Below the pieces are notes generated by a model. That model saw nothing but the letters and a program-made list of their open reading frames with translations. It was not told the DNA's origin and did not search any database. A stretch of DNA of 64,000 nt from the NCBI GenBank assembly GCA_001643675.2, contig LSRY02000015.1, forward strand, positions 682,001 to 746,000, read 5' to 3'. A program made the position numbers and the translations under genes. Source of the DNA: Monocercomonoides exilis PA203. Its lineage: Eukaryota > Protista > Preaxostyla. Each line of letters begins with the position of its first letter. Position 1 is the first letter of the stretch. This document shows, piece by piece, positions 8,222 to 52,931 of this stretch.

Positions 8222-10150
8222 CTTTCAATTTTAATTCTTCCTGTTTTATTTCCATTTGTTAATTTGATAATCATTCCAATTATTCTATCTAGAGATAATT
8301 TTATCATTTTGCTGTAATAGATTGATTTATTTCTTTTTCACCACTCTTTTATTTCTTTGATTCTATTATATTCTATCTGAATGAGGAACAACAACATTTT
8401 GAGGTCATTTCAAACGATGTACTCTTCAATGTGTAATTATCTATCAATGAAAAGAAGAATAGCTATCAAATAAATGTTTTCATGAGAAAAATTTGAAAAT
8501 TGAAATTGGAATAAAAAAAAAGAACAATAATTTTCACAAACTTCGAATGTTCAAAGAGAATAGCTTATTCGTTTGAGAAGTGAATCTGATTTTCATCAAT
8601 TATTCCATCATTTCAAATCTTTCCTTGTTTCAGAAACTTCATTTCGAATTTCTTTTTTTAAATATTTTCCCCCTCATTTCTCTCTTCCTTTTCAATTATT
8701 TTTTCATTCGTTATTTCCGAATTTTTATTATTTCTTCAAAGCTGTTTTGTCAAATTTATTTCTGTTGTCTTCACTTTTTCCATTTTCTTTCATCGCTCAT
8801 GCATCATCTTCAAATCGTTCAATATTTCCAAAAATAACTTCCGAATCATCAATGGCCTTCCTCCAAGCGCAGCGCAAATCTTTCATTTTTACGCGTATTC
8901 TTCCGACCCTCCTTCAAGATTCTTTATTTCTGATTGTTTTGAAACAAACTGGAAAACATCTCATTTCGAGCTTCATTTCTTTTTTCGAAAAACAGTCATC
9001 GTTCATCAATGAATCTTTTAGAAAGAAAAAAGAAGCGATTTACAACATTGACTCAAATTCTTCGTCACTTTTCCTGAAATCCTTTTATCTCTTGATTTTT
9101 CAGGTGATGACTTCAAAACTTTTCATCAAAAACAAAAGATTAATAAATATATGAAACAATGAAGAAAATAATTAAAAAACCTTCTATTTTGTTTGAGCAG
9201 CGATTGAAACCAATGAGTAATAAGTTTCACATTAGGTTTTTGAGTCAAAGGCATCATTTGTCTCGTTTCACCTTTCTCCAAAGGAATAAAGACCATCTTT
9301 GCAAATCAAATTTTTAAAGATGCATGAGCCAGAAAATTAATCCATTTCATCTTCAAAGCGCTTTGGATCTTTCTCAACAAACGTTTTTCGTTCAAAAAAC
9401 TCCATAAACTGAACTGAAATTATTTCGAGATAAAAATTGAGTTTCTATTAAAAAACAAAAAGGAATATAAAATTCAAATCGAATAAAAGTCTTTTTTGTC
9501 CTTCATGCCTTCAAAATCATCCATTTCCTACAAAGAAAAAATATCTGACAGAGACAAAAAAAAAAAAAACCCTTTGAATTCGAAGAAGAGCATGAATAAA
9601 ATATAGTTTTGCTTTATAGTTGCATTTGAACGTTCAATTGAGTCATAAGACCGGAAAAAACAGAAAATACAAAATGCAGGAATAGAAGTTTTATTATGGT
9701 CCAGAATGGTTTTTTTATTTGCTTCGAATTTCAGAGAAACATCAATGAAAATATAAAAAATAATTATTAATGCTTCGAAAACAGAATCAATCTTTTTCAA
9801 ATTATTGAATTTTCCTTTTTTTAATTGTTTTATAAAGACAATCACTTTGTTTATTATCCAATTGAAATTTAGAAAAAAAAAATAAAAACAAAAATATTTC
9901 GAAAATTGTTTTATTTGAAAAAAAAGGCAAACCCACTTTGAAGTCATTCTTATCTTTTCATCTTCCTTCTCAAAAATTCACAAAAAAAACATCAGTAATC
10001 GAGAAGTAATAATCTTAATCTCCTTTGCAAAGAAAAGATAGAAATTTCTGAAAGCCAAAGATGATATCTTCATTTCCCTCATCTTTCATCTTTTCAAACA
10101 CTTTCCTCTTCGACTTTTTCCTTTTCGCTTCTTCCAATTCATCCTCCTCT
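8222..10150. repeat. Diverged segmental duplication (upstream region of paralog 1), homologous to ~45773-48140
   Basis: Colinear blocks shared with the second copy, e.g. aatatttccaaaaataacttccgaatcatcaatggccttcctcc and gagtcataagaccggaaaaaacagaaaatacaaaatgcagg. Confidence 0.85.
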
Positions 10151-10240
10151 TTTTTCTATTTGTTTGAAATCGAACGCAAAAATGTCAAATATTCATGTGT
10201 CATATTGTCATCCAACGTTAATTCCTCAATCTCTTCCGAC
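10015..10240 (-). pseudogene. 3' remnant of a lineage-specific alpha-helical multigene family member, paralog of 47996-49363
   Basis: Translates ...EEIEELTLDDNMTHEYLTFLRSISNK*KKEEDELEEAKRKKSKRKVFEKMKDEGNEDIIFGFQKFLSFLCKGD*, matching the C-terminus of the 47996 gene. It has an internal stop and the 5' part is missing. Confidence 0.75.
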
Positions 10241-20422: not shown

Positions 20423-22733
20423 GGCATAGGTCTAAATTGTACCAGTAGTAAATTTAACGTTTTTATTCAAATTTTCAATATATTATTAATTAACTTAATT
20501 ATTTAATTCTATATTATCGAAAATATCATAGAAATATTGCAATTAAAAACAAAAATTAAAAATGTTGATCTGTCCCATAAAAATATTTATCAAATTATCA
20601 TTTTAAGTTTTTTGAGTGTTAAGGAGAGATTATGTTGTTATTTGCGTGTGAAATGCTTGTCAAAAATTCATTATTTACATAAATCTTTTTTAATTATATT
20701 GACATGCGTTATATTTTTCATTATAAAATTCTATTCGTAATATGATTCTTGTCTGATGACATTGAATTTTTGTCCAGAGCGAAACATTTGTTGAATAGAA
20801 TTTTTTATTTTGGTGTGAGGGGGATGGATAAAAAGCGGCTTTTGCAAATAATGAAGTTACAGATGAAATTTCAAAATGTGGAGCGATTTGCATGAGAACC
20901 AGAGTTCGGGAACTCTTTCAGTCCAATTTTTTTTCTTAATTAATGCAATGTTCATTATAGAGGTGGAGGAATTTTGTGTGTTTCTGTTAATTCTATCAAA
21001 ATAGAGAACAACTCGTTCAATGCATGTACTGCAAAAAATAATGATGGAGGAGAGATGAATGTTGGCTGTATTTTTAGAATGTGTCAAGATCGGTGGTTGC
21101 GAATTAAAGAAATGCAAAGCAAGTAGAACGGGAGGGGGGCTTGTGCGTTTGAGTGCTTATTCACTTCATACTCGCTTACAAGTAATTGTGGTGGAGGGAT
21201 GTTTTGTCAAAATGTTCCAGCTGCATTCAAAATGTGGAGCCTCCAGTTTATTTCTTGCTCTGTATTGAGTTATGGTGGAAAATTTTATTTCGCGCCAAGT
21301 CAATCAACGGCTCCAAGTTGCAACACTTATTACTATATCTTCTTCTTCCACGATTGTGGATGAACCAATACTACTCCATATGTGCATGATGTGTATTTTG
21401 TAGATTATTACAATCTCTTTTCGTCACACAACCCGTTCTATGAATCGTACACAACAAATACTTATGATACGAGAGTGTGCCGTTTTTGCTATTCGAGCGG
21501 TTGTACGTATCAGGCCACAGAAAAGAAGGGATGGCTGAAGAAAGGGGTTTTTGATTCACTTGTTGCAGTGAGCGGATGCAGAACAGACAAGTTGGACGGA
21601 GTGGATAAGCCAACTGCATGTAGAACCATTGGTATTGCTGTTAAAAAGAGCGTGATCTAATTGATCTTATCAGTGATCTTGATGGAAGGGAGTAATCAAA
21701 GGGTGACAGCAACAATCGATTTTGGATCCATGAACATTTCTGTTTTGGAGAAAGGAAGAGAGAGGAGTGTGATTGGGACAGGAGCACTTTCTTTGTCACC
21801 GACAACGCTGTTCAGTGTGACGAGTGGACAGCTGGAAGTGAAACATGCAGGGATCGATCACAACTCAAAAAGTTCATCGCTGAGTGCGTTTGTGGTTTCT
21901 GATGGGAGCGGATCACTTTCATTGGAGGATATGTTGATCTCGTCAAGTGTTAGTGGAACAAATGTTATATCATCATCGATATTTGTGATGGCTCTGTCGC
22001 AATTGAGGATGAGTGGTGTTATGATAGAAAACATGAAAATAAGCCAACTTCTGTTTTCCGAACCATCATCAGCAGTGTCAACATCAGGAGAGAGTGTGCT
22101 GGAGTATGTGACAGTTCGAAATGTGACTCTAACAGGAGAAGATGGAGTGGTGATTGCAAGAGCGTGAAGGGAAACTACACATTTGTGGTGTGAAACGCAA
22201 CGATTGAGGTATGTGAGTGTGTGAATGGAAATGGAGGGGGGATAAAAGTCGAACTTTCATCATCAACAATCAAAACTCATATTAGAACAACCACATCGCA
22301 AGATGGAGAACAATGAAGGTTTGTGAATGAATTTTTCTCAAATAAAATGAAAATGCTATTCAAATTGTTTTGATAGAAAATGTTTTTTTCAATTCTTTCT
22401 TTTCAAAATGCGCAGAATGTATTTATTAAAATAAGAAAACAAAGCATTAACTTATCCATTCTTTTTGATTAGCAGTCATGCCAAAAAAATATAGCAAGGC
22501 TGAAACAAAATTTAACATTCAAAATATAACTCTTATACTCCAAAAAACTAAAAAAACAAAAAATCAAAAATATTTTTATGGGACAGATCAACATTTTTAA
22601 TTTTTGTTTTTCATTGCAATATTTCTATGATATTTTCGATAATATAGAATTAAATAATTAAGTTAATTAATAATATATTGAAAATTTGAATAAAAACGTT
22701 AAATTTACTACTGGTACAATTTAGACCTATGCC
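20423..22733 (+). mobile_element. Non-autonomous 2311-bp TIR DNA transposon (Pack-type, Merlin/hAT-like 8-bp TSD), copy A
   Basis: 166-bp TIRs starting GGCATAGGTCTAAATTG (20423-20588 / 22568-22733). Near-identical inverted copy at 24961-27270. No transposase inside. Confidence 0.92.
20950..22290 (+). pseudogene. Captured fragment of a beta-helix surface-protein family gene inside Pack element A
   Basis: Broken frames encode FNACTAKNNDGG, HDVYF, PTACRTIGIAV, IDFGSMNISV, LFSVTSGQLEV and GNGGGIKVEL, which parallel the ectodomain modules of the giant proteins. Confidence 0.75.
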
Positions 22734-45772: not shown

Positions 45773-47405
45773 AATAATTTTGAACTTGCATAAAAATAGA
45801 TTCTTTTAGCCTTTCTTCTATTTGAAAAACCGATCGTCATTTCAATTATTCTGTCTAGAAATAATTGTATCATTTTGTTATGAATGATTAATTTTTATTT
45901 TTTCATCACTCTTTTATTTCTTTGATTCTATTATATTCTGTATGAATGATGAATATCAGCATCTTGAGGTCATTTCCAACAGAATATTCTTCTTGGAGGA
46001 ACTTCCTATCAATGAAAAGAAGAATAATAATTCAAAAAGATATTTTCATGAGAAATATTTGAAGATTGAAATTGGAATAAAAAACGAACTATATTTTCAC
46101 AAACTTTGAATGTTCAAAGAGAGGTCTTTATTCGTTTGAGAAGTTCATTTGATTATCATCAATTATCCATCATTTCAAAACCGTCCTTGCTTCAAAAACT
46201 TCATTTCGAATTTCTTCTAAAGTTATATTTTCCTCTTTTCTCTCTTTCTTTTCTTTCATTCTTTCATTCGCTATTTCCGGGTCTTCACTATTTCTTCCCA
46301 ATTGTTTTGTCAATTTTGTTGCAATTGTCTTCACTTTTTTCCATATTTCTTTTGTCGCTCACATTTCATCTTCAAAGAATTCAATATTTCCAAAAATAAC
46401 TTCCGAATCATCAATGGCCTTCCTCCTCGGCTCAGCGCAAATCTTTCATTTTTATGTGTTTTCTTCTTCAATCCTCCTTCATGATTCTTTGTGTATGATT
46501 GTTTTGAAATAAACTGGAAAACATCTCATTCCGAGCTTTCGTTTCTTTTTTCGCAAAGCAGTCATCGCTCGTCGATGAATCTTTAAGAAAGTTTAAAAGA
46601 TTGGTCAACAGTATTGAATCAAATTCTTCATCATCTTTCCTAAAAGTCTTTTATCTTTCGATTCTTCATTTGATGACTTCAAAGCTTTTCATCAAAAACT
46701 ACAAAAAAATAAATTTATAAAGTTAAAAAGAAAATAATAAAAAAACCTTCAATTTTGTTGATGAGTCCATTGTTGCCAATGACAATTTTCTTTCCATTCT
46801 GTTTTTAAGTCAAAGGCATCGTTTGTCATTGCATTCCCCCTTTCCCCAAGCGAATAAAGGTCATAGAAGAAAGTCACCATTAAAAAGGCACTTGAGTCAG
46901 AAAATTAATCTATTTCATCTTCAAAGCGCTTTGTGTCTTTCTCAACAAACGTTTTTTGTTCAAAAAACTCTTTTAACAGAACTGCTTATATTTCAGATAA
47001 AAATTGAATATTGTCTTGAAAACAAAAAGGAATATTAAATTCAAAACAAATAAAGACTTTAAAGTCTTTCATGCCTCAAAATCATCCATTTCCTGCAAAC
47101 AAAATATATCTAGTGGGAACAAAATAAAACCCTTTTGCATTCAAAAAAGAGCATGAATAAAATATTGTATTGCTTTTTAGTTGCATTTGAGCGTTCATAT
47201 GAGTCATAAGACCGGAAAAAACAGAAAATACAAAATGCAGGAAAAGAAGTTTTATTATGGTCCAGTATGTTTTTTTTTTTTTTATATTTCAAATTTCAGA
47301 GAAACATCAATAAAAATATTGATAAAAATGTGTTAGTTGAAAAGAATTATTGGCATATTCACAGAGAACGGGGCAGCTTTGATCTGACCCAGTATTTTTT
47401 TATTT

Positions 47406-47566
47406 TTAGGGTTAAAATTCCAAAATAATCACTGTATTAATTGATTGGTTTAGGTTTTAGGGTTAGCGTAACAGATCTTGGGTTTAGGGTTATGTTCCCG
47501 CTCTTCTTTTTAGGGTTAGCACTCGAAAAAACTTGATCTTTTTTGGATTTTTTGGGTTAGGGTTAA
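47406..47566 (+). repeat. Five dispersed telomere-like TTAGGGTT motifs inside the MITE
   Basis: TTAGGGTT at ~47406, 47457, 47484, 47510 and 47557 (GGGTTAGGGTTAA), all on the same strand. Confidence 0.8.
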
Positions 47567-47603
47567 GCCAGGTTTAAGTTGAGTCATAAGAAAGCAAAGC
47601 TGG

Positions 47604-47700
47604 GCTTTGGCTCGAGTAGCGCAAGCGGTAGCTACCTCGACCATTGATATTCCGTTGGTCAAAGGTCGGGGGTTCGACTCCTGCCAAAGCTCTTTTTTTT
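47604..47700 (+). ncRNA. tRNA-like Pol III transcription unit (non-canonical cloverleaf)
   Basis: A-box TAGCGCAAGCGG (47617-47628), B-box GGTTCGACTCC (47671-47681), closing stem GCTTTGGC/GCCAAAGC, and a T8 terminator at 47693-47700. Confidence 0.7.
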
Positions 47701-47995
47701 CTGTGTTTTTTATTATTTTTTTCAATGAAATTTTTTTGCCCCGTTCTCTGTGAATATACCGAATTATTTTTATTATTATTATTGAATCTTCCTTTTTAAA
47801 AAAAAAGTTTTTTAAAGGCAACCACTTTGCTGTTTGTCAACAAGGGATGAAGAAAAATAAAAAATAAAAGTCAAAATGTTTCGAAAATAGTTCAATTTCG
47901 AAAAATGGATAACTCTATTTTAATGTCACTCTAATCTTTTCATCTTCCTTCTCTAAATTCACAAGATAAGCATCAACAGTGGAGAGTCAATAATC

Positions 47996-50827: not shown

Positions 50828-51838
50828 GGGTCAACTTTTTAATGGGACTTTTTCCCTTATTGGCACTTTTTTTGTTTTTGACTGCCAACTTTCAACAAAC
50901 GTTGATTGGCTTTCAGTACTTCAAAAAACCTTTTTTTACAAGTTTAACACAATTTATTTACAGTTTGTTTTTTAATTTTTGCTTATTACACATTGAGAAA
51001 TTACGTTTTTTTGTTAAATTTGAAAGGACTTTTACCAGCCAACTAGGCAACGTCCAAGAAATTGGATACATGTTTCAAATAGCAATTACTATTATCTAAC
51101 TACTTTTAAATTCTTTTTTTTCATAAACACTTTTTTCTTGTTTTTTTCACATTTCATTTTTTTAACAACATTCTAACATAAAACCGATTATTTCTTTGTT
51201 AATATAATGAAATGATAAAAATAAAAATTTGATATGATAAACAAATAGTCTAATAATAAAGTATTGGAAAAATGAAACATTAATTTTTTCTATTTGTCAA
51301 GAACTTATCTTTTTTTACAAAAATTTGATCATCGATTATTTTAAGAAAGCTCCATTTGTCCGTTTTAGTTAAATAGAAAAAATAAATGTTTCATTTTAAC
51401 AACACTTCATTATTAGGGTATATGTTTTTCATATCACATTTTTATTTTTATCATTTCATTATATTCACAAAGAAATAATCGGTTTTATGTTAGAATGTTG
51501 TTAAAAAAATGAAATGTGAAAAAAACAAGAAAAAAGTGTTTATGAAAAAAAAGAATTTAAAAGTAGTTAGATAATAGTAATTGCTATTTGAAACATGTAT
51601 CCAATTTCTTGGACGTTGCCTAGTTGGCTGGTAAAAGTCCTTTCAAATTTAACAAAAAAACGTAATTTCTCAATGTGTAATAAGCAAAAATTAAAAAACA
51701 AACTGTAAATAAATTGTGTTAAACTTGTAAAAAAAGGTTTTTTGAAGTACTGAAAGCCAATCAACGTTTGTTGAAAGTTGGCAGTCAAAAACAAAAAAAG
51801 TGCCAATAAGGGAAAAAGTCCCATTAAAAAGTTGACCC
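50828..51838. mobile_element. 1011-bp foldback element (~370-bp perfect, ~470-bp imperfect arms)
   Basis: GGGTCAAC...GTTGACCC termini. Mirror ORFs 50842-51099 and 51567-51851. TAATT flanks both sides (possible TSD). Confidence 0.88.
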
Positions 51839-51864: not shown

Positions 51865-52730
51865 GATCATGAAATGAAAATACATCATCTGAACAAGATG
51901 TCCCACAGCACTGATGATACATGGGATTGGTTTCAAAGGGATGTTTTGGATGGAAGATTCAAACAGTGCACGCAATGAAGAATAGAAATGTCTTTATATA
52001 AAAAAATCCTATCTCAAGACAATGAAGATGCTACCGATGTGACAGAATTATTTGTTTGCTTTCAGGTTTATCCATTGAAAATCAAAAAGTGGGATTAAAC
52101 AAAATCATGCATATTCTGTTATTCAAATGAATAAAATTTTCAATTACACAAACTTTTCTTCTTCTTGGAATTCACAGAAACTCTGTTTGTTTTTGTCATT
52201 TTTTGGCTGCAGCTTCCGTGTCCAAAATTGCAGTTAATTCCTTTGAACCTCTTAGTGGTCTGAATTCATTCGTGGAAATTGACGATGTAATTTTGCACAT
52301 AAGGAAATTTCACAAAGGACGTTTGGAAAAGCAAATTTAGTTGTTTGGAGCAGTTCAAAGAAATCCTGAAGGAAAACAAGGAAAACTTTTCATTATTCGT
52401 GTTCGAAACAGGAAAAATTACACATTAATACCTATCATCAAATCCAATAGTTTGCCTGGAACGAAAAATAATAGCGATGAATGGAAAGCTTATGTATCTC
52501 TGGAAGAGATAGGGGATACACATAAAACTGTTTGTCACAAGTATCACTTTCGTGATTCAGAAAGCGAAATTATGATGAATATGATTGAAGGCATTTGGAG
52601 TCAGTTTCGCTGGGATATGCCAAAAAATGGTATTAGAGAAAAATTTTTAGACGATTATATGCACTCATTTGTTTTTTGCAAGACAAGAGAGCTATCATTT
52701 GTGGAAACAATCAAAGCCATTTGCAGATAG
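51865..52730 (+). pseudogene. Merlin / IS1595(ISXO2)-like DDE transposase, degenerate
   Basis: RCYRC Zn-ribbon remnant; SGLNSFVEIDD...RKFHKGR...*LFGAVQR; TLIPIIK...PGT..SDEWKAY..L; HKTVCHKYHF.D; N.IEGIWSQF. In-frame stops are present. Confidence 0.85.
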
Positions 52731-52931
52731 AAGCCATAAGAATTTGTTGAAGAAGAGAAGGAAGACAATGAAGAAGATGATGATGAAGAAAACGTTCCTG
52801 AAATGGAAACTGAAGATGAAACAACTCATAATGATTCTTTGGAAGTTAGTGACGGGGCTGAACATTCTGAATATGAGCCAGAATAAATTCAAAACAATTT
52901 CTTTTGCTCATCATTGTTTATTCGCATCATA

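Follow-up and report, generated by a model that had tools for sequence, protein, structure and literature searches.

The 409-bp element and its internal motifs

Positions 47352-47760 of the window analysed here, a 64-kb stretch of contig LSRY02000015.1 of Monocercomonoides exilis PA203, are occupied by a 409-bp insertion with the structure of a miniature inverted-repeat transposable element (MITE), whose interior consists of an arm with telomere-type motifs and a tRNA-like unit with the boxes of an RNA polymerase III (Pol III) gene. The insertion ends in terminal inverted repeats (TIRs) of 24 nt, GGCATATTCACAGAGAACGGGGCA at 47352-47375 (plus strand) and TGCCCCGTTCTCTGTGAATATACC at 47737-47760 (minus strand), which are complementary at 23 of 24 positions (96%). 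It is flanked by GAATTATT at 47344-47351 and again at 47761-47768, an exact 8-bp target site duplication (TSD). The original prediction, made from the letters of the window, had described a clean insertion with just these ends, and the coordinates bear it out. The empty paralogous site that it placed near position 9780 stands in part: a paralogue of the flanks at 9384-10168 (plus strand, 79% identity) lacks the element and represents a loose empty site, but its junction at 9755-9800 is too diverged to give one clean 8-mer. No long open reading frame (ORF) was seen within the 409 bp; no search aimed at ORFs was made.

The arm spans 47371-47564 on the plus strand (element positions 20-213). It holds, as predicted, five co-oriented TTAGGGTT motifs on the plus strand (47406, 47457, 47484, 47510 and 47557), which make up five of the six occurrences in the window, compared with 1.18 expected in 64 kb. 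In the genome of 82,301,135 bases in 101 contigs, (TTAGGG)5 occurs 21,467 times versus 5 times for a control pattern, and long forward arrays of it lie at the high-coordinate end of contig 1. Judged by this abundance and by the arrays at the contig end, the motifs of the element match the telomere repeat of the host. Host tRNA genes, for which similar upstream motifs had been considered, essentially lack them: TTAGGG was present in only one of 28 distinct 300-bp regions upstream of such genes.

The tRNA-like unit of 87 nt lies downstream of the arm at 47604-47690 and is, like all of its parts, on the plus strand. It is closed by the terminal stem GCTTTGG/CCAAAGC and contains a perfect B box, GGTTCGACTCC at 47671-47681, which is the single match in the window with 0.04 expected. 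The A-box-like D-arm, TAGCGCAAGCGG at 47617-47628, begins 54 nt before the B box does. It is one base longer than TRGCNNAGTGG, which we take to be the A-box consensus, and resembles D-arms of the host, e.g. that of tRNA-Trp (TGGCGCAATTGG). Two bases past the unit follows a T8 run (47693-47700) resembling a Pol III terminator, for which other copies of the family have T5-T7. Internal A-like and B boxes at tRNA-like spacing and a subsequent oligo-T run give the layout of a type-2 Pol III gene with the A box one base off, and the predicted boxes and T8 terminator were recovered. No further motif arrays or tRNA-like units were found elsewhere in the 64 kb.

Merlin relatives of the element

The 409-bp MITE and its copies, here called family A, comprise at least nine intact copies in the genome that are 90-100% identical to the window copy, the nearest with 99.3% identity, and about 17 tRNA-like units. 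Most of the checked copies are surrounded by 8-bp TSDs that differ in sequence, e.g. ATATGTTG, ATAATTTT, GCACAGTG, AAAATATC and AGATAGAC; in four copies, one substitution or indel has to be allowed for before the TSDs agree, and copy L035 has none. By its short length, its TIRs and TSDs and its multiple copies, the window element is a multi-copy, to all appearance recently active cut-and-paste MITE that makes 8-bp duplications. The genome-wide search for copies thereby sustains the original prediction of a cut-and-paste MITE with a TIR family and shows that the element is not single-copy. An old relative (L018) is 75% identical; its B box is gone and its motifs are eroded at the background rate.

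Two copies of the MITE, L005 and L006 (G000:C30:603818-604224, plus strand, and 610247-610653, minus strand), have identical flanks and opposite orientation at a distance of 6 kb, and this insertion sits within an inverted segmental duplication. One other copy is split at element positions 111-118 with an 8-bp overlap; its parts, L010:1501-1798 and G000:C6:346190-346307, are on the same strand at a distance of about 24.8 kb, and an A-run of ~45 nt precedes the junction in L010. This suggests a very large insertion that made an 8-bp duplication.

A candidate autonomous partner was found in locus L017, where a 1,508-bp element (L017:187-1694) has both 24-bp TIRs identical to those of the MITE and the 8-bp TSD TAACATAA. 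Its ORF (L017:251-1318) is open and encodes a transposase of 355 aa, which matches the Pfam profile DDE_Tnp_IS1595 at positions 24-150 of 153 (E 1.6e-23). A match to Zn_ribbon_IS1595 is weak (0.003, 17.9 bits) and falls under the curated cut-off of 25.4. The Merlin superfamily, reportedly described by Feschotte in 2004, comprises DNA transposons and MITEs with likeness to IS1016/IS1595. Its TSDs have a length of 8-9 bp (PMC4482050). Given the IS1595-type transposase in the partner, the 8-bp TSD and the termini shared by MITE and L017, we assign the MITE to the Merlin superfamily (IS1016/IS1595-type) as a non-autonomous member. There is good support for transposition of the MITE with a Merlin transposase provided in trans, and a 1.5-kb autonomous Merlin of the L017 type is the likely mobiliser on the evidence of the shared ends.

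L017 corresponds to element positions 1-43 and 215-409 of the MITE, whereas positions 44-214 are absent from it. The first part of the common 3' region, 47566-47603 on the plus strand of the window (from element position 215), holds the zone ~8 nt before the unit in which the transposons treated below have landed. In L017 the tRNA-like unit and its T-run are almost identical to those of the MITE and lie on the same strand as the ORF, ~220 bp past the stop codon. Since the TIRs are identical and the 3' region with the unit is shared, the unit belongs to the autonomous element and was not captured by the MITE; the comparison shows its origin in the 3' subterminal region of the parent. The unit that had been described as cargo of the MITE is thus present as stated, but it is a resident of the L017 3' subterminal region.

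Of 980 candidates from a transposase search of the genome, 114 Merlin loci were scored, many with open frames of 340-400 aa, which shows that the genome harbours a large Merlin radiation. Among these 114, L017 alone is both close and open; the next closest is a broken copy with 84-90% identity, and the remainder reach 46% at most. The window itself contains a degenerate Merlin transposase remnant at 52002-52877 (plus strand), which is 33% identical to residues 42-344 of the L017 protein and has no long open frame. Adjoining this remnant, a foldback-type element at 51000-51666 consists of a 305-nt inverted repeat with 95% complementarity and a 57-nt spacer.

A sister family of MITEs, family B (L022, L023, L024, L026 and L027), has the TIR GGCAATATTTAAGAAAGGTGGGCA, which matches that of family A at only 14 of 24 positions, and likewise 8-bp duplications. 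Both families share the arm with ~86-87% identity. When the A and B consensus sequences are compared, only one of the 40 motif positions is changed, as opposed to 26 of 153 positions in the remainder of the arm (Fisher test, one-sided, p=0.011). L017 contains no TTAGGG. The motif arm, without a counterpart in L017 and common to the sister family, is a module of its own.

Unit B, in contrast to the arm, cannot be aligned with unit A, yet it belongs to the same length class, occupies the same position in the element and carries comparable signals: the A-box-like TAGCCGATCGG, the B box GGTTCGAACCC, a 9-bp terminal stem and a T6 run. A genome search of the BLAST type with the unit alone returned family A and one fragment only; sister units have diverged too far to be reached in this way. 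In D-arm and B box, the units stay inside the range of host tRNA sequences. The units were also predicted to fold far better than shuffled sequences, with -39.6 kcal/mol (z -4.4) for the unit at 47604-47690 and -45.3 (z -5.3) and -41.2 (z -5.2) for others, z -5.2 being the value of unit B, and a terminal stem of 8-10 bp closes all folded units.

The original prediction had further linked the MITE with a Pack-type element at 20423-22733 of the window, whose TIRs of ~53 nt start with GGCATAGGTCTAAATTG. The GGCATA terminus is indeed common to the MITE and the Pack TIR (GGCATAGG...), but the proposed match of 8-bp TSDs cannot be read, as the flanks of the Pack element differ from each other (AAGAGATA versus TGCTACGC).

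Transposons at the edge of the unit and before host tRNA genes

Eight interrupted copies of the Merlin family were found, and seven of them (L031, L032, L033, L034, L035, L011 and L019) are broken at the 5' edge of the unit, within -12 to +15 of its first base; the sole interruption elsewhere is the split copy L010 at element positions 111-118. For insertions distributed uniformly over 409 bp, simple arithmetic gives a chance of ~4e-8 that seven of eight fall into this 27-bp interval, and the chance of five of five insertions in 14 bp is 5e-8. The inserted elements are of several kinds. In L031 and L032, a 3.2-kb PIF/Harbinger element with the TIR AGAACTTAAACG... and a 3-bp duplication has its 3' end 8 nt before GCTTTGG. 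A 969-bp Harbinger-type MITE with the duplication AAA is located 8 nt before the unit in L035, and the broken autonomous copy L019 has a Harbinger-type end 11 nt upstream. At the unit of L034, two or more elements are stacked over 5.3 kb; in L033, an element whose 17-nt terminal repeat is doubled is inserted at about +4, and in L011 another family at about +15.

At least two of the inserted families also occur 7-10 nt upstream of genuine tRNA genes. The PIF/Harbinger family of L031 and L032 (L031:1250-4413; L032; L055:1495-1640; L059:1497-1588) has its 3' end 8 nt upstream of tRNA-Pro and ~10 nt upstream of tRNA-Phe, oriented as it is at the Merlin unit, so that the distance is 8-10 nt for all three targets. 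The unit-side terminus of L034 was likewise found 7 and 9 nt before tRNA-Arg and tRNA-Lys, and an element with termini like those of the L033 insert (X-like) lies 4 nt before tRNA-Thr. Among the 30 best-scoring tRNA loci, taken without selection, at least eight have a transposon end ~4-11 nt upstream; loci with such an end are L072/L073 (Lys), L085 (Arg), L076 (Thr), L079/L080 (Gln), L086/L087 (Arg), L050 and L041. The short flanks between transposon and gene have no sequence in common; targeting therefore looks positional, as expected for elements that find the Pol III initiation complex, and the PIF/Harbinger family with the TIR AGAACTTAAACG... looks like a DNA transposon that homes to the starts of Pol III genes.

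At some tRNA loci the elements form stacks with abutting ends, as if later arrivals had displaced earlier ones from the gene. A 256-bp palindromic repeat is nested in the Harbinger copy of L031 (L031:1311-1566); with dozens of genome matches on both strands and 67-99% identity it is a high-copy foldback MITE. Host tRNA genes without an upstream transposon (25 nt upstream in L060-L089) show an A-rich block (GAAAAAT) at about -22, a CCTTTTC-like sequence at about -10 and AAGAA or AACAA immediately before +1, a pattern that may be a Pol III promoter element of M. exilis.

Competing explanations and known systems

Since seven of eight insertions lie at the edge of the unit and the same families are found before real tRNA genes, we infer that the unit binds the Pol III machinery. 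Occupancy by Pol III factors is fairly likely on this evidence, and the cell probably treats the unit as a tRNA gene. As the best explanation overall we favour, with moderate confidence, a non-autonomous Merlin element with a parent-derived unit bound by Pol III factors and a separate telomere-motif arm. In this model, TFIIIC and TFIIIB would assemble on the unit as they do on a tRNA gene, and tRNA-upstream-homing transposons would for this reason repeatedly insert ~8 nt before it. A short RNA of ~90 nt would probably be made from the unit. A telomere-repeat-binding Myb protein of the host could read the TTAGGGTT motifs, and with TFIIIC on one side and the Myb protein on the other, the ends of the element might be kept open or insulated, which would favour the transposon and not the host. 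Such a benefit of unit and arm is speculative; it is proposed because the boxes are kept in two unalignable units and the motifs are better conserved than their surroundings. Rather unlikely, though compatible with the model, is the broader scenario in which a clade of small Merlin elements took up two open-chromatin signals of the host, a TFIIIC/Pol III unit at one end and, in the MITEs, an array of telomere-repeat sites for a Myb factor at the other, so that the ends would stay accessible or unsilenced. In this scenario new Pol III sites would be spread as a by-product and serve tRNA-homing DNA transposons as landing pads, and one transposon family would influence where others can settle.

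Several observations weigh against this explanation. At normal thresholds tRNA models accept no tRNA at the unit: ARAGORN with default settings reported none in either family or in the old relative, and Rfam RF00005 gave no hit in the units at E<=1 or E<=10. With its thresholds relaxed to 90%, ARAGORN drew unit A and the L017 unit as a cloverleaf whose variable arm is long, whose D stem is poor and whose 'anticodon' loop has 6 nt; at 80%, unit B came out as a tRNA of the Val type interrupted by a 5-nt intron. For all its likeness to a tRNA, the unit is decayed and is not a genuine tRNA gene. The Merlin units also lack the A-rich/CTTTTC/AAGAA pattern that precedes most host tRNA genes. L017 transposes without the motif arm, which is consequently unneeded in cis, and the comparison of units and arms covers two or three diverged lineages. 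As to the insertions, it might be the sequence or shape of the DNA, and not a bound complex, that the inserted elements recognise, and L031 and L032 may go back to a single nested insertion whose composite product moved on later. Serving as a landing pad harms the copies, so the unit does not have to confer an advantage.

The main rival is possible, though clearly less likely than the favoured explanation, and regards the unit as a passive relic. An ancestor of the Merlin clade would have captured a tRNA gene or the head of a short interspersed nuclear element (SINE), which then decayed neutrally and without benefit; leftover TFIIIC binding would draw the tRNA-homing transposons, and the motif arm would likewise be a hitch-hiker. 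In agreement with this, the unit is rejected by tRNA finders, L018 has lost its B box and motifs as described, insertions at the edge of the unit disrupt copies, and the autonomous element functions without the arm. Neutral decay does not readily account for the fact that the unalignable units of two families keep their boxes, terminal stem, length, position and T-run, nor for motif columns better conserved than the spacers in the A and B consensus or for the intact unit in the sole open autonomous copy.

A role at the RNA level is improbable. Some long non-coding RNAs carry tRNA-like structures at their ends, and their 3' ends are defined by cleavage at these structures. By analogy, RNase P and RNase Z could excise the unit from a Pol II transcript and thereby set the 3' end of the transposase mRNA, the unit of the MITEs being a leftover. 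While its location in L017 on the strand of the ORF shortly past the stop codon and the strong terminal stem of both unit types would suit such a role, RNA processing requires neither a perfect B box nor an immediate oligo-T run, MITE families without an ORF retain the unit, and the tRNA-homing insertions indicate a complex bound to DNA.

Still less probable is a reading in which the TTAGGGTT motifs are subterminal binding sites of the Merlin transposase and the likeness of the unit to a tRNA is a coincidence. Transposases of other superfamilies often bind short subterminal repeats, and the motifs are situated 30-200 bp inside the 5' end of the element, but they occur at one end only and in a single orientation, L017 has none despite the same TIRs, and the arm also serves family B with its different TIRs. 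The joint occurrence of B box, D-arm, stem and T-run is, moreover, far from chance. Practically refuted is the identity as a PIF/Harbinger (PHIS) element with an unusual 8-bp duplication, which was first drawn from the ORFs of the 3.6-kb copies L031 and L032 (DDE_Tnp_4, E ~1e-14): these ORFs sit within the nested element with its own TIRs AGAACTTAAACG... and 3-bp TSDs, this element is also found alone, without MITE ends, before tRNA-Pro and tRNA-Phe, a Merlin partner with identical ends is present in the genome, and 8-bp duplications are not reported for any PHIS group (PMC4482050).

A cut-and-paste lineage that keeps a Pol III unit in its autonomous and miniature members would represent a new use of host machinery by a DNA transposon. 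The nested insertions are a rare read-out, from sequence only, of a non-tRNA sequence being treated as a Pol III gene, and together with the insertions before tRNA genes they show homing to tRNA gene starts for DNA transposons, beyond retroelements. In the amitochondriate M. exilis, about 35% of the genome was reported as unclassified repeat (PMC8767320); one family is now assigned, and the finding points to a large Merlin radiation.

Among known systems, the element resembles other Merlin transposons in the IS1595-type DDE transposase and zinc ribbon of its partner, the 8-bp TSD, the short TIRs starting with GG and the short non-autonomous derivatives that have the ends of the partner. It differs in that the autonomous element has a resident tRNA-like unit in its 3' subterminal region and the MITEs carry a telomere-motif arm. 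In the literature we found no description of a Merlin with a resident Pol III-type unit or a telomere-motif arm, nor of a Pol III unit residing in any other cut-and-paste family. A Pol III promoter inside the element is the hallmark of SINEs, which move via RNA. Like tRNA-derived SINEs, the MITE is dispersed in many copies and has a part derived from a tRNA, with A and B boxes, whose fold is no longer that of a functional tRNA. SINEs lack TIRs and terminate in a tail or a LINE-derived 3' end, whereas the MITE has 24-bp TIRs, TSDs of a fixed 8 bp, no tail and the unit at its 3' side; lacking the marks of retroposition, it was rejected as a SINE.

In yeasts, tRNA genes or TFIIIC and Tbf1, which binds TTAGGG, form boundary elements, and in plants telobox motifs recruit TRB proteins. 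The two motif types of the MITE are classic sites of host factors with barrier or nucleosome-excluding activity and are in this respect similar to the yeast boundaries; for the oxymonad element the resemblance is a lead only. Telobox-bearing transposable elements are mentioned in a preprint (bioRxiv 10.1101/2022.10.24.513474).

The nested insertions, finally, have their counterpart in mobile elements that target tRNA genes, such as Ty3 of yeast and TRE and DGLT-A of Dictyostelium. Like these, the nested DNA transposons insert a few bases upstream of Pol III genes with specificity for position and orientation, and they take the Merlin unit as a target as well. The known examples are retroelements, while the homing elements of M. 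exilis are DNA transposons and their target itself lies within a transposon.

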